Positions 3,552-56,415 of a DNA stretch of 64,000 nt are shown one piece after another. Position 1 is the stretch's first letter. Every line of letters starts with the position of its first letter. The notes beneath the pieces were generated by a model, which worked only from the letters and a program-made list of their open reading frames with translations, searched no databases and was not told where the DNA came from. A program made the translations under genes and the position numbers. Source of the DNA: Selaginella moellendorffii (taxonomy: Eukaryota > Plantae > Lycopodiophyta); NCBI RefSeq assembly GCF_000143415.4, contig NW_003314371.1, positions 203,380 to 267,379 on the forward strand. The letters are read 5' to 3'.

Positions 3552-3651
3552 NNNNNNNNNNNNNNNNNNNNNNNNNNNNNNNNNNNNNNNNNNNNNNNNN
3601 NNNNNNNNNNNNNNNNNNNNNNNNNNNNNNNNNNNNNNNNNNNNNNNNNNN
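3552..3651. other. Assembly gap (100 N), probably collapsed extensin repeats
   Basis: Run of exactly 100 Ns between the extensin repeats and their upstream region. Confidence 0.98.
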
Positions 3652-11621: not shown

Positions 11622-12203
11622 CGGATGGATGGAGAGAAGGGCTGATTATATACTGACGAAAAAGAGAAGGTTGGGCAGCCAGCGAGCAAGCAAGCAAGGT
11701 GTACATAGTGTGCTTGAAAAGAAACGATCTCTCTCGGCTGGGACTGCGGGATGGACCCCCATGATCTCGCTCTCTCTCTTAAGAGGGGAGGAGAAATGCA
11801 AAGTGACGAAGAAGAGGGGATTCTTGCGGGAGTCCGGTTGAGGTTGAGGTGTGACTAGGACGACGACGTAGTAAGTTTCCAGTCCCCACGAGAAGAAAAA
11901 AAGGTTTGGAGAATGGAATGGGTTTTACAAAGCTGTTGTTGTGAAAGGTTTAGAACAAACACACAATCTTTTATACAAGGACGTAAGATTTTTTCCCTTT
12001 GCTTTAGGAAGTTTCATGGTGGTATTTACAAAAAGTTTTACGATTTAATATTTTAACATCTTTTCTGCATATATAAATCAAGTTGATGCGAGAAAGATGC
12101 CGGCGAGTTGTGTAGCAAAGAAAGCCGAAATAATGACACATTAAAACTGACGCAAGCGTTTTGTTAATTTAAAGACTATTGGCCAACTATTAAGCATATC
12201 TTA

Positions 12204-12850
12204 GGTATATCCACGAAACTGTGATCGCATCTCCACCGTCCGTCTGCATCATCCCAGCCGTCGAAGCTAGGTCCAAACTTAGCCCGAGAGTCTATTTTTA
12301 GTATCTAGCTCTTACAAAAGCACAGTGCATCATCTAGGGTTTTCTCGTGAGGATGAGGGGCGGCGCTCCGACGCCCTAGACAGGGCCAGGGTTTTGTAAG
12401 CCCGGGGGCCCTATCGCTCAGTTGCGGGAGCGATCCATTTGTTGTGCGTCACCGGGATTGAAGGCTTTGGCATAGGGATGTCACAGTACTGTGGTACAGA
12501 GAAGCACATCGCACTGGAGGTGATTTCTTTATCACCTGCGGCTCCATGTACTTCTCCGTGCCACAGTACTGGGAACGAAAGAGGTACGATCGTATTGCTT
12601 TTCTTTTATTTCCAGGTATTGGAGACTGGCAGCCAAGATTTGGCCTTGTGTCTATGCAAACGCAAACAAGCTCCAAAGCCAAAGCTCTCAAGCTCCAGGG
12701 CGGTTCCAAAGCTCGAGCGAGGCATCAAAGTTCCATCAAAGGCTCCAAAGCTCAAACTCAAGAGTTTGGGGTGTTTTTGTTTTGTGTGCTATGTAATTTT
12801 TTGTCAGCTATGAAGATTTAGCACAAGGAACTATGGCTTTGCTGATACCA
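12204..12850 (+). repeat. Hairpin-containing repeat module, copy 1
   Basis: Shares the leader catcatcccagccgtcgaagctaggtccaaa, a telo-box-like ctagggttt, the hairpin at 12484-12571 and a short gtacg...ttccag intron-like segment with the other copies. Confidence 0.85.
12484..12571 (+). ncRNA. Candidate pre-miRNA-like/hpRNA stem-loop (copy 1)
   Basis: 5' arm cagtactgtggtacagagaagcacat...aggtgat pairs with 3' arm atcacct...atgtacttctccgtgccacagtactg. Expression is unknown. Confidence 0.45.
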
Positions 12851-12856
12851 GGCGAG

Positions 12857-14850
12857 ATTATTCCCTGCTTGCCCTGTTGTTGTGCGAGTTGTTTAGAGTC
12901 GATTGCTTGGTCCACAAGCAAGTAGCGCTCGATTCTCCTTTGGTTGAGATACCAAGCTTGTCTGAGACGAAAGTCGTGGCGATAGTCTCCGCTTCCACAT
13001 CTCGGCGCCGTACGCGTAGTAACCTCTCCTTGTAACTCATCTACGGACGCCCCACTGGGTCGGTTCTGTGAATGATTTCTTCGATTGATTCGCAGGCCCG
13101 TGTCTTGGTAGAAACGGTAGAGTGTATCGATGTGAATGGTGTTCCTTCTGCTCTGACGAGGTCGGGTGGGAAATAGAGCAGCTGGTCTCGCATTGCTGGT
13201 GCCTGGATTCGCATGTCCAGGTAGTGGTTCTCCTCGTCTTGTTTGATGACTACGGCCCCCAGATCACGTAGATGACTATGCCTCCATTTCTCGTCCCATG
13301 GATGTTGCTTTCCAGTTCCATGCTGTGCTGACGTCAGGGATCCGGCTCTGCTGGTCTTCCCAGCGATGATGTCGAAATGCTCTTATTCAGTCCGCAGTCG
13401 TGTGAGAAGCCGCCGATGTTCATCACCATCACCATCTCCACCATCACCGTCACCGTCACTTGCAATGTGTCCGAGTGCTGTTGCTTGTGCTGTCTGTTTC
13501 CTTTGCATTTTGTTGTTGTGGCGTTATAGGCAGTATCTTGTAAAGATCTTTGGGCTTGGTATCTTGTAAAGATTATGGCGAATTTTAAATCCTGTAGGTA
13601 GTGCTCTTGATATCTTAGTTCTCGGTGTGGTTCCCTGCAGCCAGTGCTGCTGCATGGCGTTTTTTCTGGGCTCCCACTTGGGCTTGGAGCGTGACCAATC
13701 ATTGCTGAGCGTGTTGGAGCGTTTGCGGTTCAGTGTATGCATTGTGTGCCATGGACACAAGTGTGTTGCCCGCCTCCGCTTCTTGCTGCTGGCCTGATGT
13801 AAGATGCATCATTCATCGCCCAACCGCGACCAGCTTAGATGGCCGCCGATCGGGAAGGTTGGCTTGATCACCTTTTTGGACATTTCCTTGCGTTTGCGGT
13901 TTAGTTGGACTCTTACGCAACGAGGTCCTTTTGCCCTTTGCTGTTGTCTTTCGGTGGCGGCTGTTTCACGACTGCGGGTGTAACTTGTTGATTGCCTAGG
14001 ATCAGACGCGGTGCCTTGTTTGTCGTTTTTGCTCAGCTTCCTCGGCAACGTCAGTGTGGAGCCTGACGAGTGCATCCTCTAAAATCTTCTACGCCTCATT
14101 CATAGCTGTTCTCGCACTGACTCGCTTGTGGTGCCGTCCCCTCTAGCTGCCAGGTATTTGGAAAGCTACTCTTGAGGCTCATTGCTGTCCGTGGACGTTT
14201 CTGTCGTCTGTTTGTTTCTGTTGTTGTATGGAGGTGTTTTCGGGTGGTGGTGGCGTGCTCTCTTTGCTTCCTCAATGTTCCAGAAGCGCCGAAATCCTTG
14301 GTGACGTTCAGGCGCTCTGGAATGTTGACGTACTAGGGCGCGTACGTGTGTTGTCCCATGATGATCCTCGCTGAGTTCTTTTCTCGACTGGAACCTCCAC
14401 GGTGACCACTCCTGATTTCACGTTGGTGAAGATGATGTGTCCCAGTGCCCGGAGGGCCTCCTTCGTGGTCTCTCTCTTGGCCTGGAGTCCACCGGGCTAA
14501 AGGCATGTTTCAAGCATCACCTGGCTGGTTTCCCTCTCTGGGCCGTTCTCCGCGAACCCGTTGTGGTGTTTGAAGGTAACCAGGAATTCGCTGTTGATCG
14601 CCGTGCTGTGAATTCAGAGCTTCGCGATCTGGTGCCTCTCGTACGTGTAATGGCCAAACCAGGGGTTCACTTCCTCTCGGTTGAAGCGTGGGTGGTCAAT
14701 TCACACACTGCATCAGGTCTCCATATCTTCTATCATTCTGCAATAGTTTCTGACTGCCTTGGTTTTGTGATGCTGAGTGTAGTTTTAGAATCAGCACTGG
14801 GTCTTGGGATCCAACAGTGGGGATCTTGGGCTCGATGTTGGTGGTGACCA
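12857..14850 (-). mobile_element. Decayed L1-like LINE fragment (ORF1-like region plus start of an APE endonuclease-like ORF2)
   Basis: ORF1-like: FLVTF...EALRALGHIIF..VVTVEVPV...YVNIPERL. APE-like: GGIVIYV..VIKQDEENHYLDMRI..LYFPP..RRIERYLL. Stops and frameshifts present; inverted homolog at 26090-27570. Confidence 0.6.
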
Positions 14851-16981: not shown

Positions 16982-17612
16982 GGTATATCCGTTAAATTGT
17001 GATCACCGTCCGTCTACATCATCCCAGCCGTCGAAGCTAGGTCCAAAGTTAGCTCGAGGGTCTATTTTTAGTATTTAGCTCTTACAAAAGCGCAGTGTAT
17101 CGCCTAGGGTTTTCTCCAGGGAGTAGGTTTTCATTTGGGGGTTCGATCGGCCCTATCTTTTGCTCACTTGCGATGAATGGGTGTTGAGGGTCACTGTCTC
17201 TTCCTTGAGATCCACAAGGAGATGTCACAATACGTCACAGTACTGTGGTCCAGAGAAGCACATCGCACTGGAGGTGATTTCCATCACCTGTGGCTCCATG
17301 TACTTCTCTGTTCCACAGTACTGGAAACGAAAAGGTACGTATTGCTTTTTCTTTTTCTTTTTTTTTTCCAGGTATTGGAGGGAGTGGCAGCCAAGATTTG
17401 GATGATGCGTTAAGAAACTTCTCATCCGTGAAGATGAGCTATCCAAGTTGTCCAGGTTTTTGTTTTGTGTCACATTTGGATTTGGATTCCCAAATTCCAG
17501 CTCCGGCTGGATCGAGCGCTTGCCCAGGCTCAAATCTATGAAGATCTAGCGAACGGGTATCATACCAGGCTTGGATCGCTGGATCAAATTTCGGGAGCCC
17601 TTGGGCAAGCAG
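16982..17612 (+). repeat. Hairpin repeat module, copy 3
   Basis: Hairpin at 17238-17323; leader nearly identical to copy 1; the terminal ~45 bp (17570-17612) is inverted relative to copies 2 and 4. Confidence 0.85.
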
Positions 17613-24569: not shown

Positions 24570-25180
24570 TTTAAATTTGAAGTCTAGCGTTTAAATTTTT
24601 TGTTGAAATGAATTGTGGCTTGGATCAAAATTTTGCGAGCCCTTGGGCAAGCAGATGGCCTGTGCTAGATCTTGGGCAAGCGCTCGATCAAGAATTTGGG
24701 AATCCTACAAGAAAGTTTTCAGCCATTCCCAGAACAAGAACAACCTTAGAAGACATCTCCACGGATGAGAAGTTTCTTACCATGCCAGTTCCTGCAATAC
24801 CTGGACAAAATGAAAAAGCAATACGTACTTATTTCGTTTCCAGTACTGTGGAACAGCGAAGTACATGGAGCCGCAGGTGATGGAAGAAATCACCTCCAGT
24901 GCGATGTGCTTCTCTGTACCACAGTACTGTGATGCCAAAGTCTTCCTTGTGCATCTCAAGGAAGAGACTCAAATGGATCCTCGCCCATCGTCGCCCACCT
25001 CGCCAGATAGGGCGGATCGAAGCCCAATTCTCTCTGGAGAAAACCCTAGACAATGCACTGTTGCTTTAGTAAGAGCTAAATACTAAAAATAGACCCTCGG
25101 GCTAAGTTTGGACCTAGCTTCGACGGCTGGGATGATGTAGACGGACGGTGGAGATGCGATCACAATTTAGTGGATATATG
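24570..25180 (-). repeat. Hairpin repeat module, copy 4 (inverted orientation)
   Basis: Reverse complement of copies 1-3; hairpin at 24841-24929, plus a small adjacent hairpin tcttccttg-tgcatct-caaggaaga. Confidence 0.85.
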
Positions 25181-27574: not shown

Positions 27575-30500
27575 GATGGATAATATAAAGAATTGTTATC
27601 ACTATTGAGAATTTTTTATATTAAAATATTTTTATATCCTAAATGAATGGTCTAGATTAAAACTAATTCAACAGTTGTAAAAAACCCACTACAGTCATAC
27701 ACTTAGACCTCAAAATATCCCCTCCTATTAAAAGGATGAAAGGTAATCAAAGTTTTTTAATGGATAGGCTGAGATCAAGAAGAACATCAAGAAGAGGCAT
27801 TAATGGATTTGTAAGTGGTGTTAATTATTTTTAATCCCTTTATATGAAGTGTTTCAATTGTTCCACATGCATAATTTCTAGAGGATTGGCTTATTGAACA
27901 TCATACTAAATTTCATAAATTTGTAATCTAATTTGCTACAATATTTAATATAATTCCTTCCAATGAGCAAGGAGCCTTTTAAACAAATTACGTACCATAA
28001 AATTGGGAAAATATATTAACACTAAATCATTTATTTTATACTTTATAGGTGAGCGATGATAGAAGTTATAGCACCATTGTTGTCCCACTTGTATAGGGTT
28101 TAAATGTTTAATAAACTCTACTTAGACAAGTGAAAGAATACTTTCTAAATACTAATACTAAGATGTAACATCAATAACTCATGATAATAGTCAAGGTAAA
28201 CTCAACTTTATTAACAATATTAAATTATGACTATATAGGAGTTTATATGGCGCAGCACCAACAAAACTTTACATTGCATATACATATTAAAAAGATGGCA
28301 AACAACTATTTCAATCTGAATATTAAAAGTTCATATACTTCACAATTATTCTTTTGAAGCTTCGAACAAGCCCTTCCATCAAACCATCTGACTGTGGATA
28401 ATGAACTTAATTTGGTTGTATTACTATGTAGGCAAAGCTTTAGATATATGATTTCGAAATTGTTTATCGCATAGGGAGTTTTATGGTTGATAAACAGAAT
28501 TACCCACATATAAGACAATATCATATTGCATCTTTGACCAATTAAAATACTTATATAACTTCTCAATCACAATTTGATGTTTTATATGCCCTCATAGAAT
28601 AAGAGAGTCATGATAAGCATGGAAAAAGTGTAGAATAAATATCAAAGGCATTTTCAGTCATAAATAATCATTAAAATCAATTTTAATAAAATAAACAAAG
28701 TTGTTCTCAAATTGATCTTGAGTATATAAATGCTAAAACAATAGCAAGTGATGCAAGATTCTCAAACCCTTTATGAAGCCTTTGGATCCATGACTAAACC
28801 TTTTAAACTTCACGAACTTTGTTAATAGAAGGTAAATCTTGTTTTGCACCTTGTGGACATTAAACATAAAATATAACAACATTTGATGACATAGAATTTT
28901 TGTTTAAAAAACCATAAATGCTAAAACAACAAGATTATAAAAAGCATCAAAGAAAGGAAAGGAGCTTGAAAAAGAGTAATAACCTAAATTGCTACTAAAC
29001 ATTTATTCTATGTTATAAAGTAGTTCACCTCCATTATTTATAATGTATGGTTGATATATGCAATGAGATGACATTAACTATACACAATTGTACTCTTTTG
29101 CATTAAGATACCCTTAAGATTAATATTTGAAACATCCACACACAAAATGACAAATTTAATGCAATCAAGATATACCAAAATTGAAGGATTTGTTAATAGC
29201 TCTTTAAGATCTATAAATGCCTGTTTATAATCCTTAGACTAAATGAAAGAGATTTTGAAAAACTTTATATATATTTGTATGGTTCTTGGATATTATTAGA
29301 AGGTGATCATGATATGGTTACTTCGTTATTGAAGCGAAATAACTTGGCTGATTATACATTTCCTTGATGTTTGCTCATAAAATCTTAATATTTTTTGGAG
29401 ACCATGACAAAAAAAAACTTTGATTGGATGAGCATTGGAATAAGATGATGTATTGCAATCTTAACCCCAAATGATAAGTCAAATTTTGAGAGATCCTTCA
29501 TAAGTTGGTCAAGTACTACAACACAAAGACTATTAAATAGCTCTAAAGAGTAAAATGGAAATATAAAAGGAAGTAATGAGGAACAAAAGTGATGGAAGCA
29601 AAGGTAAAAATAAAAGGACGAAAGAGAATAAAAGTGAGAGGAATAAAAGAAATATGAAAAAGTATAAAACAAATGGGAAAAGCCTCAAAATCACATTTGG
29701 CATAATTATGCCATAAAAAATTTATACTAAAGATGAGGTCAAAAGCTTAACTCATCATCACTTGCAATAATTGAAGCTAAAACTTGAGATTGCCCACATA
29801 CACAACTAGATTTGCTTTATCCTGTGCATAAGCGTATGTAATGAAAACTGGCTCTATTGCATGACACAAATATAGATGCTAATGTATGGCGACAGACTGA
29901 GTAATAAAAGATAAACTTGAACTTATATGAACCAACATAGAGAGAGATTTTTTGTTATAAAAACAAACTTAGAAAATAAATACTAGATGAATTGGTGCAA
30001 AGTGAACTACTCAATTATACTCCTGAAAGAATAATGGAGGGGCCACTAACTTATTTGTAGAAGGACCCTCAATTACTCGCATGACTCCTCGTTTTTCAAA
30101 AGAATTTTAGTATTCAAACCTTCCATCATAGTAGCACTAACAAAATGTTGTTAATGTTAATGCTTCCACGAGGATGCCAATCCAAAAAATACCGATAACA
30201 TTGATATGTGTGGCCAACTTTATTACATGCCCAATAGTAAACACTATGGCCATGACCATGTCCTCGCCCTTATCTTTGAACATGAGCAATAGCAGCATCA
30301 ACTTTCATTGGAATAAAACTATTTCCCACAAAAAGTGGAAGTAAAGGATATATAGCAAGAAGTGGAAAAAGTGATATCTTATAACATTGCACCAGTTAAA
30401 AAAAATCATTTAGAATGGTTAGAGTAAGTGTATGTACAAATCTCACAAGATTTTGATAAAGCACTAACCACAACATTCCTAACTTGATTCATTCTGACAT

Positions 30501-31430
30501 ATTTGGCTTCATATAAAGTAAAAGGTTTCGAAAGTAAACACCAAATTACATCATTGACTCAAATAACTTTTAATGAAAACAATGCAATTGTTAGAAAGTA
30601 TCATCACAATCATCAGTATTTTTAAATATGCACTTGAAGACATTTAGAAGAATACTCAAATTCGCACAAATGGCTACGTTAACACCATTTTACCACTACA
30701 ATGCCACCCTTTGGAGACATAAGAAACTCACGTAAACATTGAATATTATCCCAAGAATGATAAGTAATAATCACCATAAAATGGTTGAACTAATAGTTCA
30801 CATTATTCCTATGGAAGAACTTTGATTGGATGTAAGGATTAGCAGTAAGAGCAAAAGGAATTGTACCACGTGCTATGAATACCATTATTAATTGAGTTTG
30901 ATTGTTTAATTCTAACCATATAGCATTTAACAATTGCACTACTTACTACTTTAGAGTCAAAGGAAGAAAAGGTTACTAAAGATGAATAAAAAGGAAAAAG
31001 ACCAAAAGAGAAGAAATTGAAAAAGTTACAAGTAAGATTTGGATAATACAAAAACTAAATCTTAACCAAAATCCCAAATCTAAATGAGTCACTCCTCAAA
31101 GATAATCAAAATTGCCCCTCACCTCCACTAATGTGACTACATAGAATATAAAAAGGGAATACAAAAGTATATATATTAATTAACCCAAAAATTTTAGGTT
31201 ATATATAAGAGCAAGTGGTTTGAATTCAAATTAATCTCACTAGTATCAAAAACTCATCACGCTAATATTAGTATATGCCACTAATATTAGTATATGCCAT
31301 ACATTTAGACCTCACAACACCATTAATTTTACATATAAATTCTATTTCAAATTATGCCACTATATATTTTATTAATAAACTATTTAGTTTTAAGATTGTA
31401 AAAATATTTTAAATAGAAATGGAAATTATT
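27575..31430. mobile_element. AT-rich, CpG-depleted island; probable ancient DNA transposon relic(s), possibly hAT
   Basis: Abrupt compositional shift and no long ORFs. The plus-strand fragment IAILTPNDKSNFERSF (~29450-29500) resembles the hAT C-terminal ERxFS motif. No TIRs found. Confidence 0.35.
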
Positions 31431-31650
31431 ACATGAAATTTTCCCAAGTTTGTTTAGTGTCTAGAACCTTCATTTTTCATTGTTTAGATGAGGAAAGCAG
31501 GATGAGACATATATAGTTCCTTTTAGAACTCACATTGTTTTGTCTGTTTGAGTCTGGTTGAAATATATAGTTTGGAAGAAGAGGAGAAAGGAAAATCTCC
31601 ATTGCTTCCAGCGACTCAAGGAAGGGTCACGATTTCTCATGAAGATCACC
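31430..31650 (+). pseudogene. Degenerate duplicate of the CIPK last exons and 3' UTR
   Basis: Matches 23190-23480: ttttcat.gtt.agatgaggaaagc, gaactcacattgt, gtttggaagaa, ctccattgcttcca, ggtcacgattt. Confidence 0.8.
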
Positions 31651-31682
31651 CTGGTCTTGTATGAAACGAAACAATGTTAAAA

Positions 31683-33434
31683 TCAACGATTGTTTGTTTT
31701 CTCTTCTCTTTCTGGAGTGATCGGGCGAAGGTCCACCCCATCGATCCTTGCAGCGTTTGCGAGGACAATGTAGGCCGGCCCATTGCGCGGCTCGAGCTCT
31801 AAAACATTCTCCACGGCGAGCCTCCTGCGCTGGAAATGGCCATAGCTTTTGCACGAGCTCTTGCAAGAGCTCAAGAAACAAAGCCAGTCCACGGCGTCGG
31901 CCACGTACGGCATGCCCGCCACCAGCCCGTACGCATCGTCGACGTGCCCGGCTCGCCCCAGCGCGTCGATCACGCAGCAGTAGTGCTGCTTGGATGGGCG
32001 CAGCCCAAAATCCACGCTCATCGACCCAAAGCACTGCCTCGATTGATCGACCCGGCCGTCGCGGCTGCAAGCCAGGAGGAAATTCGTGAAGCACGCGTCG
32101 TGGGCGAGATGATCCCACGCTTGCATCTCGTGGAAGACGCGGCGGGCATGGTTGGGAATGCCGGCTTGCGCGTGGGCCGTGAGGATCGTCGCCCACGCGA
32201 TGAGCTCGCGCTGGCCGTGGGGCATTCGATCGAAGATCTTCTCCGCGCTGTGGAGCTTGCCGGCGCGAGCGTGGGCGACGAGGATGGTGTTCCAGGCGAT
32301 GGCGTCGCGATCGGGCATAGCGGCGAAGATTTGCCTTGCCTCTTGCAAATGCCCTCTATCGGCAAATGCCGCGAGCATGGCGGTTGAAAGGATAGAATCT
32401 TTGCAAGGAAGAGAAGAGAATATCTGGCTAGCGGCATGTAAATCCCCATTACTGGCATATGCTGTAAGAAAAGAGCTCCAAGAAGAAAGGCTGTGGACCG
32501 GCATGTTGTCGAGTATGCTCTTTGCGCACTGCAGATGCCCGTGCCTGGCATATGTATTGAGCATCGCATTGCAAAGCGCTAGGGTTTTCTCTGGCGCTCG
32601 ATCGAAGAGGTGCTTCGATTCATCGATCCGGCCGCTTTCGCCAAAGGCAGAGAGCATCGTCGTCCAGGAAATCAGGTCTTTCTCTGGCATCGCAACGAAG
32701 ATCTTGGCGGCCTCGTCGACGATCTTGCTGTGCGCGGCAATGAGAGAGTTCCAGGACACGAGATTCTCCTCCGGCATCGCGGCGAAGAGCCTGGCGGCCT
32801 CGATCGGCTGATGGGAATACGCAGCGATGATGGAATTCCAGGAGACGAGGCTGTGCTCCGGCATGCGATCGAACGTCATCCTCGCGTCGTCGACTCGGCC
32901 GGCGTGGACGTAGGCAGCCAGGATCGAGTTCCACAGCACGAGATCCCTCGCGGGCGCGCGATCGAACGCTTCCTTGGCTCGATCGAGCTGCCCGGCGCTG
33001 GCGAACGCCGTCACAATGCAGGTCAGGGAGATCAGATCGTGCTGCGGCATCGCCTCGCGGAAGAAATCCTCGGCCTGGTGGATCATCCCCCACAGCTGCG
33101 CGTAGGCGCCGAGCATCGAGGTCCAAGAAACAAGATCCCTGGCCGGCATCTCGCGAAATATCGCCGCGGCGCTATCCAGCCGCCCCGCCCGGATGGACGC
33201 CGCCAGGATCGAGTTCCAGGACACGAGATTTCGATCGGGCATGCGCCGGAAGATCGCGGCGGCGAGGTCGAGCTCCCGGCCGCGAGCGCAGGCGGCAAGG
33301 ATCGCGTTCCAGGCCACCAGGTTCCAGGCCGGCATGGAATCGAAGGCGCGCATCGCGTCCGGCAGGGATCCATTCCGCGAGTGGTGGCCGATCGCCTCCA
33401 CGGAAGCGCGGATATTGTGATCGCCGCGCAGCAT
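31683..33434 (-). CDS. PLS-class pentatricopeptide repeat protein with E-like C-terminus (no DYW)
   Basis: Intronless; tandem ~31-aa repeats (A..F..MP..DLVSWN..L.A); QHYCCVIDALGRAG...AYIVLAN. First ATG is at 33434; the ORF track starts at a non-ATG codon. Confidence 0.92.
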   Translation of the reverse strand: MLRGDHNIRASVEAIGHHSRNGSLPDAMRAFDSMPAWNLVAWNAILAACARGRELDLAAAIFRRMPDRNLVSWNSILAASIRAGRLDSAAAIFREMPARDLVSWTSMLGAYAQLWGMIHQAEDFFREAMPQHDLISLTCIVTAFASAGQLDRAKEAFDRAPARDLVLWNSILAAYVHAGRVDDARMTFDRMPEHSLVSWNSIIAAYSHQPIEAARLFAAMPEENLVSWNSLIAAHSKIVDEAAKIFVAMPEKDLISWTTMLSAFGESGRIDESKHLFDRAPEKTLALCNAMLNTYARHGHLQCAKSILDNMPVHSLSSWSSFLTAYASNGDLHAASQIFSSLPCKDSILSTAMLAAFADRGHLQEARQIFAAMPDRDAIAWNTILVAHARAGKLHSAEKIFDRMPHGQRELIAWATILTAHAQAGIPNHARRVFHEMQAWDHLAHDACFTNFLLACSRDGRVDQSRQCFGSMSVDFGLRPSKQHYCCVIDALGRAGHVDDAYGLVAGMPYVADAVDWLCFLSSCKSSCKSYGHFQRRRLAVENVLELEPRNGPAYIVLANAARIDGVDLRPITPEREEKTNNR

Positions 33435-52074: not shown

Positions 52075-52955
52075 CATCCGAGACTGACCAGGATCTGTTG
52101 GGGACGCCTTGGCCAGTGATGCCCGGCGAGGAGTATGTAGACAAGGCCGTGGAGGTTTTCCGCGTTCCTGGCCATCACTTGTGCCTCCGACTCCACTATG
52201 GCGCGAATGCATCCAGCACCCGTTTGTCGCTCGTCCAGTGCTCCGGCTGCATGCCAGGTACTCTGCGTCGGATGAGTGCGCGGAGAGGATCTCAATGGTT
52301 GTCATCAGCTTCGGCTTTGGCGGAGAAGGATGAGAGGTAGAATTTCTCCCCATTTCTTTGCAGCTGTTTATATTCTTCTGTGTCTTCGTCAGGATTGAGC
52401 TTGTGAGCAATGGTCGGCCTGTTCACTGGGAATCTAGCGTATGCGCACTGGCCAAAGTTATGGTGGTACGATGGGATCCAAATCATGGTGGTGAGGGCCT
52501 CGATCAAGTTTGCTTTTGTTTTCATGTCTGTCCATCCAACTTTCTTGTCTGCGTGACCAACACTCACGATTTCTTGCCACCATGCCTGGAGTTCAGTGCC
52601 ATCCCGGACTGAAGCATGTAGAAAGTGTCTGCGTAGTCTGTCACCCATTGCTTCAATGCACTCCAGATGTTCAGTCCATCCACTGCATAAGAGTTTCAAG
52701 CTAGAAATCCCCTTTCCTGGCGATCAAGTCAACTGGAAGTCCCTCTTGGTCGAATCTCCACAGCGATCCATAGATGACAGCACTCAGTTCTATGGAGTAC
52801 TTTCCCGTCGTGATGATTCCTGATGCATTGATCAGTGCTTGGCGAGCTTTGAAATTGAAGTGCGGAATCAGCAGGAGGTAGATTGGATGAAGAATGCTCA
52901 GCTGCCTGTGCGTAGCAATTTTAAACGGTTCCATGACGGCATGCATCCTCAGCCT
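52075..52955 (-). pseudogene. LOX: Lipoxygenase C-terminal half, pseudogene
   Basis: [31 protein letters not shown]; [12 protein letters not shown]; ELQAWWQEIVSVGHADKK; NFGQ.AY; IEILSAHSSDAEYL. Frameshifts and deletions, including part of the HAAVNFG iron-ligand motif; no 5' half. Confidence 0.88.
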
Positions 52956-53417
52956 GGATGAGAGCGATCAGGTACGCATTGCTATATATTTTTTATATAA
53001 TTCTTGGATTCCTCGGGTTTTTTTACTTGATTTAATGGCAGCACGTGGAGAACAAACACTTTGCGTCGGTACGAGCTTTGTCTTTCTTTCCTTTTTATTT
53101 CTTTCGTTTTCGGTTTTTGAGGAGTGGCTCCAAGCGATTCCTACCTGGTGGCGAAGTTCCAGCGGTCCAGACTCCCAGTTCTAAACGAAACCTGAACACT
53201 GTCAATTTGTGATGTGTACAATGGAAAAATCCGAATCATGATCATCTTCAGCTAGGCCTTGTTGATAAAATATGGTGTTGGCCAGTCTTAGCCAATTTTC
53301 TTGACCGCCATTGTTCTCAACCATTATTTCTTAGGGATTGCTAGACTAATTTATCAAAGTTAAGCATATGCAACCATAGTTCATAGAGAGGAAACAAATA
53401 TAGAACAAGAGCTTTGC

Positions 53418-55565
53418 CTAAGCAGTTTTTCTACTTTTACTTCGAAGATCAGCCAGATCAAACAACATCTCCTCGTTGGTGGCATTGGCTCTGATCTTGT
53501 ACATCTTGCACAATGATTGAAGACGTTTGCGCTTCACCCTACCATCTGCAATGTCACGGATCTTTTCCAAGTCGTCCAGCTCGCTTCTATCACACACCAA
53601 GTCCCTCTTCCAATATTGGAGCTTTTCTTGGACAAGTGACTTCTCCGGTGGATCTTCTAAAGCTTCCTCGGACTCTATGCAGCCGAGAGCCTCCTCCCAA
53701 GTCCCTGGCAAGTTCACATCTAGAGAAACCACATCCATCTCGTGGCTCATCTCTTCTACATAAGGACTTCCAGACACCGGTACGGCCACCTTACACTGCA
53801 CAATCCCTGGTAAAGAAAGAAACTGTAACTTCACATATCTTGCTCATATGAAATCACTCACCTCTGATAGCTTTCTGAGAAACCTTTCTAGATGATCGGT
53901 ACTTCTGGAACTTGAAGCCGCGATAAGAATCCGGGGGTAAAAAGAAAACCAGCAGAGTTTCATCGTTGTCGGGGTGGCCGCTGTTATAAAACAGCTCTCT
54001 CCAGGCTTTCAGAGCCTGCTGCGCCTTGATCGTAGCCTCGAGAACGGGCTTGTGGTCAGTACAAGCAACGGTAACCTGTCCCAGCGTGCGTGGTAACAGC
54101 ACAAAATCAAACACCGCATTGTTCTTTCGAAGTGGCCTCCACATATACTTAATCGCATCCTCACCTGCAGGGTAGAAAGGAGGAAATCAATAAATAAATA
54201 AATCAGATACTAACCAGCTGCGACCAAAGTGTCTTCCAGATCACCTTCGTAATATCGTAGAACAAGACCAGGGCCGGAAGGAGATGCTACCAGAGCCTTT
54301 GGCTCACCTTGGCGATTTGCACACTCGTATTTAAACTGGAACTTGAATTGCACGTCGACACATCTGGTATGGTACCAGCGCAGGCAGGTCCCGCACTGGA
54401 TCCACGAAACCGTAACATCCGCGCTTGGATCCTCGGTTTGGGAACAACGTTGGCAGTGAGCAGTGTCAACCTATAGCATGCAAAATAAAACATTCAAATG
54501 GTAAAAAAGCACCATCGGCATCACCATAATTTGTTGTGACAACGCCTGCCCGATGACATATTGCTCGAAAACGAAGCCTCTCAGGGCTGAGTACTCGCTG
54601 AACGGCTGAGAAGCCTCAAGAAAGCTGCGGATCTTGTCCACGTCGGTTCTACACAGGTAGCCAGCGTAGAGATTGGCCACCTTCTCCGAGCAAAACGTGT
54701 ACTGAAACTCTCTGAAACCGGTGCCAGGCGTGACATTGAAGTGGAACAAGCGCCAAGATATGTCCTTGGCATTGTGAGAGCTCTGTAGGATCAACGATAA
54801 ATTCTTGAGTTTGGTATTCGCCAGGCACTTCATCACGTCCGAATGGAAGTATTTCTCCGTTAGATTTCGCACCTCTTGATCCCAAACATGCCGCGGGATG
54901 CCACCGTACCAGGCGAACACTAAATCAGCAGCTTTGACCTTCAACCTTACATCGTTTGCGTCGTTACCCGTCATCTTGTTCGCCGCCGAGTTCCACACAG
55001 CGAGAAGCAAACCAAACTCCCCCCTGTCCCATGGTGGCAGATAGAACGTATAGGTCAGGCGAACTTTCCTGATATCCTTCGTATTCGTGTCGTCTGGCGA
55101 TGCCGCCACAAGCGCTCGGTTGCCAATGGGTCGGTCAGGATAGACCCTTTGGTCGATCAGATGGAAGGTAACTGCCGGCGATTGGATAACGTCGAACGGA
55201 TACTTCTTCTTTGGCACCACCCGAAGATCCCCGCTGCCACGAAACTCCCACACCCAGACACCAGTCTCATAGAGAAGTATGGACTCTGGATTGTCAATCC
55301 CGGTCCGGATGATGAAGTACCAGAGAAACGCCGACTTGCCCACGCCGGAATTGCCATTCAAATGGCACAGGGCGAACTCGCGTGTAACAAGCTCTGATAC
55401 AATCTCTTTGTAGAGCGCATCGAAAACATCTCTTACGAACAAGATATGAGAAGACATGGCTGCCAAACTGACACATGCCTTTGGGAGCTCGATTACCGCG
55501 CCTGCCGCATACCAATCTGCCGTTTTTCCAACAATACCCCCCCACCATTCGGCCGCCGCCACCAT
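53418..55565 (-). CDS. Crinkler/RHS-type P-loop NTPase plus REase-fold nuclease with inserted PHD finger and C-terminal SAP-like motif (666 aa, 4 exons)
   Basis: Exons 55565-54513, 54470-54215, 54164-53862 and 53806-53418 join in frame via GT-AG introns (2001 nt). Walker A GNSGVGKS; FHLID; VAASPD; YLPPW; YGGIPR; GFVFEQY; PHD CQRC..WIQCGTCLRWYHTRC..YEC; WRPLRKNNAVFD; QVTV...H. Confidence 0.8.
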
Positions 55566-56415
55566 TGCGCTTGCGATAGGGCTTAAAGAATATTCCTGGG
55601 TTTTGCTCGGTTTGAGAGGATTCCAGGTTTTGCTTTTTTCAAGCCAACCAAAGCCATATAAAATTCTTAATTTTTTAATTTAATTTGCTTGCTCTTGTTA
55701 GTCAGCCTTTTGAATTGGATCTTATTGTGAGCTTGGAAATCGCAGAAGGAATGCAAAGATTAGTGAAAAATCACAGAAAAGAGGCAAAAGTCAATAAGAA
55801 TCAATGAAATATTGTCTGTTGCATCCAGCAATGTTTAGTTTGTTTGATGGTAGTGTTATAACTTTTAGTGTATCTATTAAAAATTAGTCAACTGAATATT
55901 TATAATTTATAAACACAAGATTAAATGGGATGGTTTGATTCCCATTGATTACTAGCTACTAACCACAACCTTGGCATCACTCTCTTAAGCTTGACAAGTA
56001 ATTCTTGACCCTCTCCCACACCTCATCATCCTTGACAATAGCATACCCTTTGCTCCTGCAATCCTTGATACACCTTGACTTGCTCCTCCTTACCACCCAA
56101 GAAGAAGACAAAGTAGCATAGTCACAACTCAAAGGCAGCTTCAAGGCAGCGATTCCCATGGGCTGCTGCCCCAGATCAAGCACATCCCCCTTTTGCAGGG
56201 CCTCAACAGGCGCCTTGACTATAATCAACCTCCTCATCGTTGTGGGGGGATGCAGAAAGCTATCCATCGACTTCTGGATCATCCTTCCTTCCACAGATTC
56301 AGTTGTTAGATTGAAGTTTAAAAAATAAGAACAATTCATTTTTCATTCTCTTCCCACCACCTCATCTTCCAGCATTCATCCTGTTCATAGCGAAGCATAG
56401 CATGGTCATGTTTAA

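Follow-up and report, generated by a model that had tools for sequence, protein, structure and literature searches.

Crinkler/RHS (CR) modules are familiar chiefly as weapons, wielded by oomycetes, fungi and trypanosomes. The reason why such modules persist in free-living eukaryotes, land plants included, is an open question (PMC12957317), which is raised in concrete form by a nuclear gene of the lycophyte Selaginella moellendorffii. The gene lies in a stretch of 64,000 nucleotides (contig NW_003314371.1, positions 203,380 to 267,379), hereafter the window, and all positions are counted from its first letter. An earlier note, made from the letters and their open reading frames, had described an intact spliced gene for a nucleoside triphosphatase (NTPase) joined to a restriction endonuclease (REase), with a PHD finger and a SAP-like end, and had proposed either the transposase of a mobile element or a domesticated defence protein. 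The gene encodes a headless member of the CR NTPase-REase module family. As to its function, we lean, without great confidence, towards a conflict module that was retained (domesticated) by its host and acts in the nucleus, plausibly in genome defence or surveillance.

53418..55565, minus strand: whole coding region from ATG to stop (SELMODRAFT_429045 / EFJ08298.1)

Kinship with the Crinkler/RHS module

The C-terminal module of CR proteins, composed of an NTPase, a helix-turn-helix and an REase domain, is attributed to Zhang et al. (2016, Nucleic Acids Res 44:3513) in PMC5289972 and PMC12957317; according to these two papers, both citing Zhang et al. (2016), CR homologues in land plants have already been published. 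A phmmer search with exon 1 as query against 1.8 billion representatives yielded 106 matches. Selaginella paralogs were the strongest, followed by a transcript of the hornwort Nothoceros aenigmaticus (P0015, E 7e-19); further matches came from Glomeromycota, Phytophthora and metagenomic proteins, and the search reached Crinkler-headed proteins of Phytophthora lilii (GMF31914.1) and Funneliformis geosporum (CAI2166028.1). In an alignment of 71 members the columns GxxGxGK, the Walker B Asp, SP, PxW..E, GGxPR, FAS, GxxFE, P..N....D and QxT..H are nearly invariant, and every family hallmark residue is intact in the window protein (AASP being found at aa 154-157 and YLPPW at aa 175-179). Since the motif positions are nearly invariant columns of this alignment, their occurrence is not due to chance. 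The motif series that the earlier note had listed as typical of the CR dyad is present in full, with the correction that the element given as PxxxNxxxD is spaced PxxxNxxxxD, one residue off.

Among the 71 relatives, Pfam matched the RHSP P-loop model in 14, nSTAND3 in 27 (counted at E 0.01 or better, those inspected falling under Pfam's cut-off) and the Crinkler header in four. Full headers are carried by P0084 (Phytophthora lilii) and P0054 (E 3e-19 and 4e-20), and P0030 (Funneliformis) gave a weaker header match (E 2.9e-5). The kinship inferred from the motifs was borne out by these direct phmmer matches and by a profile comparison with hhalign, in which 12 Selaginella sequences aligned to three Crinkler-headed proteins with 99.8% probability (E 5e-28) over 440 columns. 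The match spans from plant residue ~3, which falls directly after the header in the headed proteins, to the end of the nuclease-fold domain (~540). The Crinkler ubiquitin-like (Ubl) header itself (PF20147, LxLFLAK-type) found no Pfam match in exon 1 or in the whole protein, as the earlier reading had it, and a 120-aa open reading frame (ORF) upstream of the gene had no Pfam match either. The N-terminus (MVAAAEWWGGIVGKTADWYAAG...) displays no long hydrophobic core by eye. Because the alignment starts right after the header and no header was detected by Pfam, the plant protein represents a headless copy of the CR C-terminal module.

In comparison with CR effectors, the region from ~3 to ~540 is homologous to the post-header module, and the motif series and predicted folds are common to both. 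In contrast, the window protein is without the Ubl/LxLFLAK header and without an evident secretion signal, and adds a PHD finger between helix 1 and strand 1 of the nuclease-fold domain, an acidic linker and a basic tail resembling a helix-extension-helix (HeH) motif; its gene resides in a free-living plant, has introns of plant size and lies among housekeeping-type genes. Trypanosomatid RHS proteins (Pfam RHSP, PF07999) are linked to the family through the P-loop domains of the 14 relatives mentioned and through RHS/RHSP clusters of the ESM Atlas, which were matched by the model of the C-terminal domain at template modelling (TM) scores of 0.49-0.56. The window protein itself reaches no RHSP score, is devoid of RHS_N and carries the PHD finger and the tail.

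In a phylogenetic tree, 11 Selaginella sequences and the hornwort sequence formed one group (Shimodaira-Hasegawa-like approximate likelihood-ratio test, SH-aLRT, 100). Every close protein relative comes from S. moellendorffii. The Selaginella family is lineage-specific, with at least a dozen loci in the genome; its paralogs are old and divergent (32-68% protein identity to paralog P0009), and many truncated family fragments are also present in the genome. A full-text literature search for Selaginella with Crinkler, REase or PHD returned nothing relevant, and no description of a PHD-inserted headless Selaginella form was found in the literature covered, which did not include Zhang et al. (2016) itself.

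Two side observations concern the family. At least six gene models of subfamily 2, full-length and truncated, are located on one 3.09-Mb scaffold of GCA_000143415.2, numbered within the eight consecutive models SELMODRAFT_409319-409326 and including LOC9650130 and LOC9650134; this numbering suggests a local tandem expansion. In the hornwort protein P0015 (residues 1-135), a 130-residue N-terminal extension resembled the Crinkler header at sub-threshold scores (Pfam E 0.06; hhalign E 0.11). The register agrees with that of the header, with LNLWLFN where Crinklers have the LxLFLAK-type motif, and is suggestive as a register only. If this header is real, one land-plant lineage kept a header that Selaginella lost; the source of P0015 is a transcriptome, and contamination is possible.

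Gene structure and transcription

54513..55565, minus strand: exon 1 (aa 1-351), with the NTPase, helical lid, winged-helix region and first helix of the REase-fold domain
54471..54512, minus strand: intron 1, 42 nt, GT..AG, supported by a paralog and the RefSeq model
54215..54470, minus strand: exon 2 (aa 352-437), with the PHD insert and the first REase-fold core strand LVLRYY
54165..54214, minus strand: intron 2, 50 nt, GT..AG, seen in a spliced contig of run X1
53862..54164, minus strand: exon 3 (aa 437-538), with the core of the REase-fold domain
53807..53861, minus strand: intron 3, 55 nt, GTGAGT..CAG, seen in a spliced contig of run X1
53418..53806, minus strand: exon 4 (aa 538-666), with the last nuclease-fold strands, an acidic region predicted to be disordered and the helical tail

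Spliced translation of the four exons (minus strand, 55565-53418) yields a coding region of 666 aa with no internal stop. It is identical in every residue to P0120, i.e. EFJ08298.1 (SELMODRAFT_429045, UniProt D8T4W0), which is carried in GenBank as "hypothetical protein"; the gene model is not new but annotated already. As the gene had been annotated as hypothetical and the CR kinship of land-plant proteins had been published, the advance made here is incremental, not categorical.

The open frame by itself is no proof of the model, because many alternative GT..AG combinations at the locus likewise leave it open. Three independent lines fix the model: the identity with P0120; the exon borders of the RefSeq paralog P0009 (XP_024516943.1, 663 aa), which coincide with those of the window gene, including the junction of intron 1; and contigs of the RNA-seq run X1, 100% identical to the window, which skip exactly 55 nt (intron 3) and 50 nt (intron 2), the skipped segments being bounded by CT..AC on the plus strand. 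The four-exon gene with introns of 42, 50 and 55 nt proposed earlier is thereby confirmed. At the level of transcripts, introns 2 and 3 were verified by the spliced contigs, whereas intron 1 had no read coverage in the RNA-seq runs and one contig stops exactly at its acceptor. An alternative in-frame donor for intron 1 at 54524, 12 nt upstream, results in a 54-nt intron and the removal of 4 aa. This form is used in the GenBank model of the other haplotype; the 42-nt form is favoured by paralog alignments. The X1 contigs at 100% identity span 21 of the 30 bins of the coding region. The gene is transcribed and correctly spliced, at a low level in the samples seen.

Predicted structure of the NTPase half

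55332..55355, minus strand: Walker A, GNSGVGKS (aa 71-78), its three Gly and the Lys being nearly invariant across the 71 aligned members
55152..55166, minus strand: Walker B strand, FHLID (aa 134-138); the residue after the Asp is Gln instead of Glu/Asp
54891..54905, minus strand: GGIPR (aa 221-225) of the helical lid; G222, G223 and R226 (P0009 numbering) nearly invariant
54741..54758, minus strand: SWRLFH (aa 270-275), conserved Ser/His strand in a winged-helix-like region; family consensus SHxLxH

Structures were predicted for paralog P0009. Its full-length AlphaFold2 model has a predicted local distance difference test score (pLDDT) of 75 and a predicted TM score (pTM) of 0.72. Residues ~6-306 match AAA+/STAND ATPases (Foldseek E ~2e-5; VIA Z 9-10), which supports the P-loop NTPase fold predicted from the sequence. 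All matches are tied, among them CED-4, AVAST5, NOD2, Apaf-1, plant NLRs, Orc1/Cdc6, RFC, Clp (ClpC), TnsC and mS29; in the model the class is clear, namely AAA+/STAND-like, but the matches do not single out a subclass. In the region that joins the NTPase to the REase-fold domain, the model predicts helices at 226-263, those at 238-263 preceding the conserved Ser/His strand, and then strands at 272-276 and 285-289, and the alignments with CED-4 and Orc1/Cdc6 extend to about residue 305. GGIPR presumably resembles the GxP motif of STAND NTPases. In Pfam, nSTAND_NTPase5 scored E 0.15 against the window protein, in which no repeat-type sensor domain is present.

This arrangement recalls STAND/AAA+ switch ATPases coupled to nucleases (Avs/AVAST, McrBC), with which the window protein has in common, by prediction, a layout of nucleotide-binding domain, helical lid and winged-helix-like region and the coupling of an NTPase to a nuclease fold. 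The best matches of the NTPase half include AVAST5 and CED-4, and the REase-fold matches include McrC. Unlike these systems, the window protein has no sequence-level membership and no sensor repeats, and its domain order is NTPase followed by nuclease.

Predicted structure of the nuclease-fold domain

54564..54578, minus strand: GFVFE (aa 330-334), conserved E334 on the first REase-fold helix; G, F and E nearly invariant
54106..54135, minus strand: PLRKNNAVFD (aa 447-456), D456 at the position of the PD aspartate; P and D nearly invariant
54052..54078, minus strand: QVTVACTDH (aa 466-474), QxT strand and conserved H474; Q, T and H nearly invariant

The C-terminal domain (C-domain) was folded alone as residues 286-545 of P0009 and was modelled with confidence except for the PHD insert. 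The helix bearing E334 corresponds to residues 36-56 of this model, a strand begins directly after the position of D456, and the QxT strand comprises residues 174-178. In a VIA search of 48,161 PDB representatives, about 40 of the top 50 matches were REase-fold proteins (Z up to 6.1), including R.BspD6I, N.BspD6I, McrC, NgoMIV, Cfr10I, Card1, Can2, FokI, SgrAI, HindIII, NucC, VRR-NUC and Shedu. In the ESM Atlas, the nearest clusters were those with a Crinkler header or RHSP (TM 0.56-0.67 over 184-205 residues, with those at 0.61-0.67 spanning 190-205), followed by RHS proteins (TM 0.49) and then by bacterial Mrr_cat proteins. Both folds on which the earlier note had staked its reading, the P-loop NTPase and the REase type with its PD-(D/E)xK fold, were thus recovered by structural matches.

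The PHD insert and the C-terminal tail

54312..54455, minus strand: PHD finger (aa 357-404), C4HC2R; Pfam PHD E 1.5e-5 on exon 2
53445..53534, minus strand: KRKR patch (aa 629-632, resembling a nuclear localisation signal by inspection) and helix-loop-helix tail RLQSLCKMYKIRANATNEEMLFDLADL, located in the sequence

The PHD finger (PF00628) scored 25.4 bits on exon 2 alone, against a cut-off of 24, and 19.6 bits on the whole protein; that of paralog P0010 scored 24.5 bits. UniProt labels the allele and several paralogs as "PHD-type domain-containing". The insert of ~75 residues separates helix 1 of the nuclease-fold domain from strand 1, and so interrupts the nuclease region as described before; at the same point the hornwort and non-plant relatives have a short hairpin only. 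The finger is present in both Selaginella subfamilies and missing from the hornwort sequence and all non-plant relatives, a distribution in the tree which places the insertion before the expansion of the family and after its split from the hornwort sequence. The closest solved PHDs to the finger of P0009 were KDM5A PHD3 (E 5e-5), KDM5B, BPTF, PHF8/PHF2, ALFIN-LIKE 3 and TAF3. In PHDs that read H3K4me3, the Trp residues at the W-x-x-C and W-[FY]-H positions form the aromatic cage. Both cage tryptophans, W374 and W383, are retained in the window PHD (W-I-Q-C ... W-Y-H). By its sequence, the finger is a Selaginella-specific insertion of the predicted H3K4me3-reader type. It differs from the reader PHDs that are its best solved-structure matches, and with which it shares both Trp (KDM5A PHD3, BPTF, PHF8/PHF2, ALFIN-LIKE), by its insertion within an enzyme-fold domain and by an Arg as eighth zinc ligand.

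An acidic, probably disordered stretch precedes the KRKR patch and the tail. In the P0009 model, pLDDT is <50 at 544-609 and helices are found at 608-659. At the position that the helix-loop-helix occupies in the window protein, the tail of the subfamily-2 paralog P0110 matched Rho_N (PF07498, E 2.4e-9) and SAP (PF02037, E 8.5e-4), and the same SAP/Rho_N motif is recognised by eye in the tail of P0013. The SAP-like end that had been assigned to the window protein, though it describes the family fairly, can accordingly be demonstrated in subfamily-2 paralogs and not in the window copy, whose tail had no Pfam match at E up to 10. Between the tails of subfamily 1 and those of P0110/P0111, hhalign gave an E of 0.22, not significant, though the expected residues align.

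Alleles of the gene

The protein P0127 (EFJ30118.1) is encoded in a second locus (L002), in which the neighbours are collinear with the window. The order in L002 is a 526-aa gene, the CR gene, a CRAL-TRIO gene, an F-box-like gene and a 529-aa gene, and the window counterparts of the 526-aa and 529-aa genes are PPR genes. As the neighbours are collinear and the flanks 97.5% identical, P0127 represents the allele of the other haplotype. The two alleles show no indel in the coding sequence (CDS), and the ORF is intact in both haplotypes. Outside the PHD finger they differ by 12 non-synonymous and 18 synonymous substitutions (dN/dS 0.19); the NTPase, the core of the nuclease fold and the tail are under purifying selection. 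Directly 5' of the start codon, window positions 55580-56336 are ~79% identical between the haplotypes, with many indels, and the promoters of the two alleles may differ.

Proposed function and alternatives

In the domesticated module that we favour, the NTPase would gate the action of the nuclease-fold domain on DNA, working as a nucleotide-dependent switch or as a device for oligomerisation. This we infer by analogy with CR modules, where toxicity is ascribed to the REase domain and its regulation to the NTPase (PMC5289972). The basic/HeH-like tail and, in members with an intact finger, the PHD would tether the protein to chromatin or DNA, and the tethered NTPase-nuclease would plausibly act in genome defence or surveillance. 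For the window copy, with its damaged PHD, the working parts are probably the NTPase, the tail and the nuclease-fold core. Loss of the header, a PHD built into the nuclease fold and a DNA-binding-type tail in some members constitute the signature expected of nuclear domestication, and the window locus with its roughly one dozen paralogs offers a concrete, testable plant example of a kept CR module.

Several observations weigh against this reading. Both structure models are those of P0009, which is ~65-76% identical to the window protein (three tblastn segments). In the NTPase, judged by its sequence, hydrolysis may be slow, given the Gln after the Walker B Asp. The REase-fold Z scores are individually modest (<=6.1). 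Foldseek with the isolated C-domain found nothing in the PDB at E <=0.001 (best DdmD, 0.04; scattered matches to XPF, Mus81, BstYI and Bax1 below threshold), and a profile of the C-domain retrieved only noise from the PDB sequences, mostly nanobodies; as the Foldseek search was not significant, the REase fold is assigned from the VIA search of all representatives and from the ESM Atlas. Q466 and T468 of the QxT strand occupy the place of the canonical (D/E)xK, so that catalysis would need a non-canonical site and the nuclease activity is putative. A nuclear location is suggested by the KRKR patch, the PHD finger and the HeH-type tails of the family; the SAP-like tail is statistically supported in paralogs, not in the window copy. 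In the window allele seven of the eight zinc ligands are in place (C357, C360, C377, C380, H385, C388 and C401), followed by R404 (CANR); the other haplotype has CASC, and all other aligned PHD-bearing paralogs have CxxC. Across residues 346-412, which contain the PHD, the two alleles differ by 11 non-synonymous and 1 synonymous substitutions (ratio ~2.8), a distribution of substitution classes different from that in the rest of the gene (Fisher's exact p 0.005). Set against P0009, both alleles seem to have derived changes in the PHD, and at this locus the finger is either relaxed or diversifying. Lastly, in three deep RNA-seq runs, of which ~12% of the reads were counted, only 0-6 reads per run were placed on the gene. 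Three X11 reads at window positions 53996-54069 have two mismatches and loose ends and carry the sequence of P0009 (...EFYQDNNNDD...), not that of the window gene; part of the apparent coverage of the locus therefore stems from paralogs.

The substitution of QxT for (D/E)xK leads to the main rival of the preferred reading, a non-catalytic chromatin- or DNA-binding ATPase switch. According to this alternative, the REase fold no longer cuts and is reused as a DNA- or protein-binding module in an NTP-dependent switch or scaffold. QxT is found family-wide, Crinkler-headed members included, and is therefore a family trait and not a decay of the window copy. In addition, paralogs P0121-P0124 and P0002 have Gly for the conserved Asp, with P0124 and P0002 also lacking the conserved Gln and His, while their PHD and ORFs are intact, and constraint on the NTPase and tail would suit such a derivative as well. 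Nonetheless, E334, D456, Q466, T468 and H474 show almost no variation even among very distant relatives, those with Crinkler headers included, which is the pattern expected of an active site, and mutations in the REase domain abolish the cell death caused by CRN8, a protein of a different CR architecture (PMC5289972). We consider loss of catalysis unlikely on balance, yet a serious contender. The window copy is the opposite of P0121-P0124 and P0002 in that it has kept its nuclease core residues and lost part of its PHD zinc site. Such natural variants, with a complete PHD zinc site in one haplotype only and Asp-less paralogs, form a ready comparison set for the requirement of the single parts.

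The excess of amino-acid change in the PHD bears on a second alternative, an NLR-like immune sensor, in which the STAND-like NTPase would oligomerise upon detection of a pathogen or transposon product and unleash the nuclease-fold effector, the detection being made by the PHD as sensor or bait or by another part of the protein, following the logic of prokaryotic Avs/AVAST and plant NLRs. The top fold matches of the NTPase half (AVAST5, CED-4/Apaf-1, NOD2, plant NLRs), the nSTAND3 matches among the relatives and the lineage expansion, with its subfamily-2 cluster on the 3.09-Mb scaffold, are likewise consistent with it. Against this, the Z scores are tied with those of generic AAA+ proteins (Clp, RFC, TnsC, mS29), a repeat-type sensor domain is lacking, and the PHD excess is based on 12 substitutions, which relaxed constraint, including the loss of the zinc ligand, explains equally well. 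The sensor reading is possible and thinly supported, and we deem it improbable. Extended to the whole Selaginella family, it would describe an NLR-like immune or genome-surveillance device built by the plant from a Crinkler-type toxin module. In this device the STAND-like switch would oligomerise and license a non-canonical REase-fold nuclease, and the PHD would target or sense, possibly by baiting factors directed against chromatin readers. Such a sensing or bait role would explain the excess change between the alleles; we hold this broader proposal to be doubtful to a like degree.

The lost zinc ligand and the scarcity of reads, together with the strong divergence of the upstream region between haplotypes and the many truncated family fragments, would also be expected of a family member in decay that has no function left. 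For a gene whose ORF is intact in both haplotypes, whose CDS has accumulated no indel and evolves at a dN/dS of 0.19 outside the PHD, and which has kept all hallmark residues and yields correctly spliced transcripts, this is very improbable.

Genomic setting

The earlier note had left the choice open between a domesticated protein and a transposase. Prokaryotic transposons have been put forward as ancestors of the NTPase-REase dyad (Zhang et al. 2016, as cited in PMC5289972), TnsC is one of the tied fold matches, and the family is multi-copy, all of which would be in line with a transposase or an accessory gene of an uncharacterised mobile element. However, a search for terminal inverted or direct repeats within 10 kb of the gene yielded nothing beyond short matches such as chance would produce. 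The DNA of the P0009 locus (L001) resembles that of the window only within the CDS (75%), and the window gene occupies the same site in both haplotypes, between collinear PPR, CRAL-TRIO and F-box neighbours. The age and divergence of the paralogs likewise speak against mobility, and the sole flank in common with another copy is a lipoxygenase fragment, common to the window and locus L003 and typical of segmental duplication. The transposase proposal is not upheld, and we give it hardly any credence.

A short way downstream of the gene, at window positions 52095-53004 on the minus strand, comes the lipoxygenase 3' fragment (Pfam Lipoxygenase, profile ~474-672); it is also found in L002 at ~12150-13141, where the GenBank model of P0127 (830 aa) has it fused to the gene via an extra splice. 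In L003 (10540-12717), the 3' part of a CR-type gene (86% identity to exons 3-4) is followed by a lipoxygenase fragment of the same kind, and both adjoin an intact lipoxygenase gene. This arrangement points to a segmental duplication and to mis-fused gene models. Contamination or recent transfer as the source of the gene was rejected on account of introns of Selaginella size and the collinear plant gene context in both haplotypes.

Elsewhere in the window, three MIR1094 precursors were detected at 12478-12580 (plus strand), 17232-17332 (plus strand) and 24832-24935 (minus strand), scoring 116-124 bits against an Rfam gathering threshold of 80; they are among the marks of a Selaginella genome. 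An assembly gap of 100 N occupies positions 3552-3651, and the stretch 28001-32000 is AT-rich, with a GC content of 0.29-0.36 compared with a window mean of 0.49.

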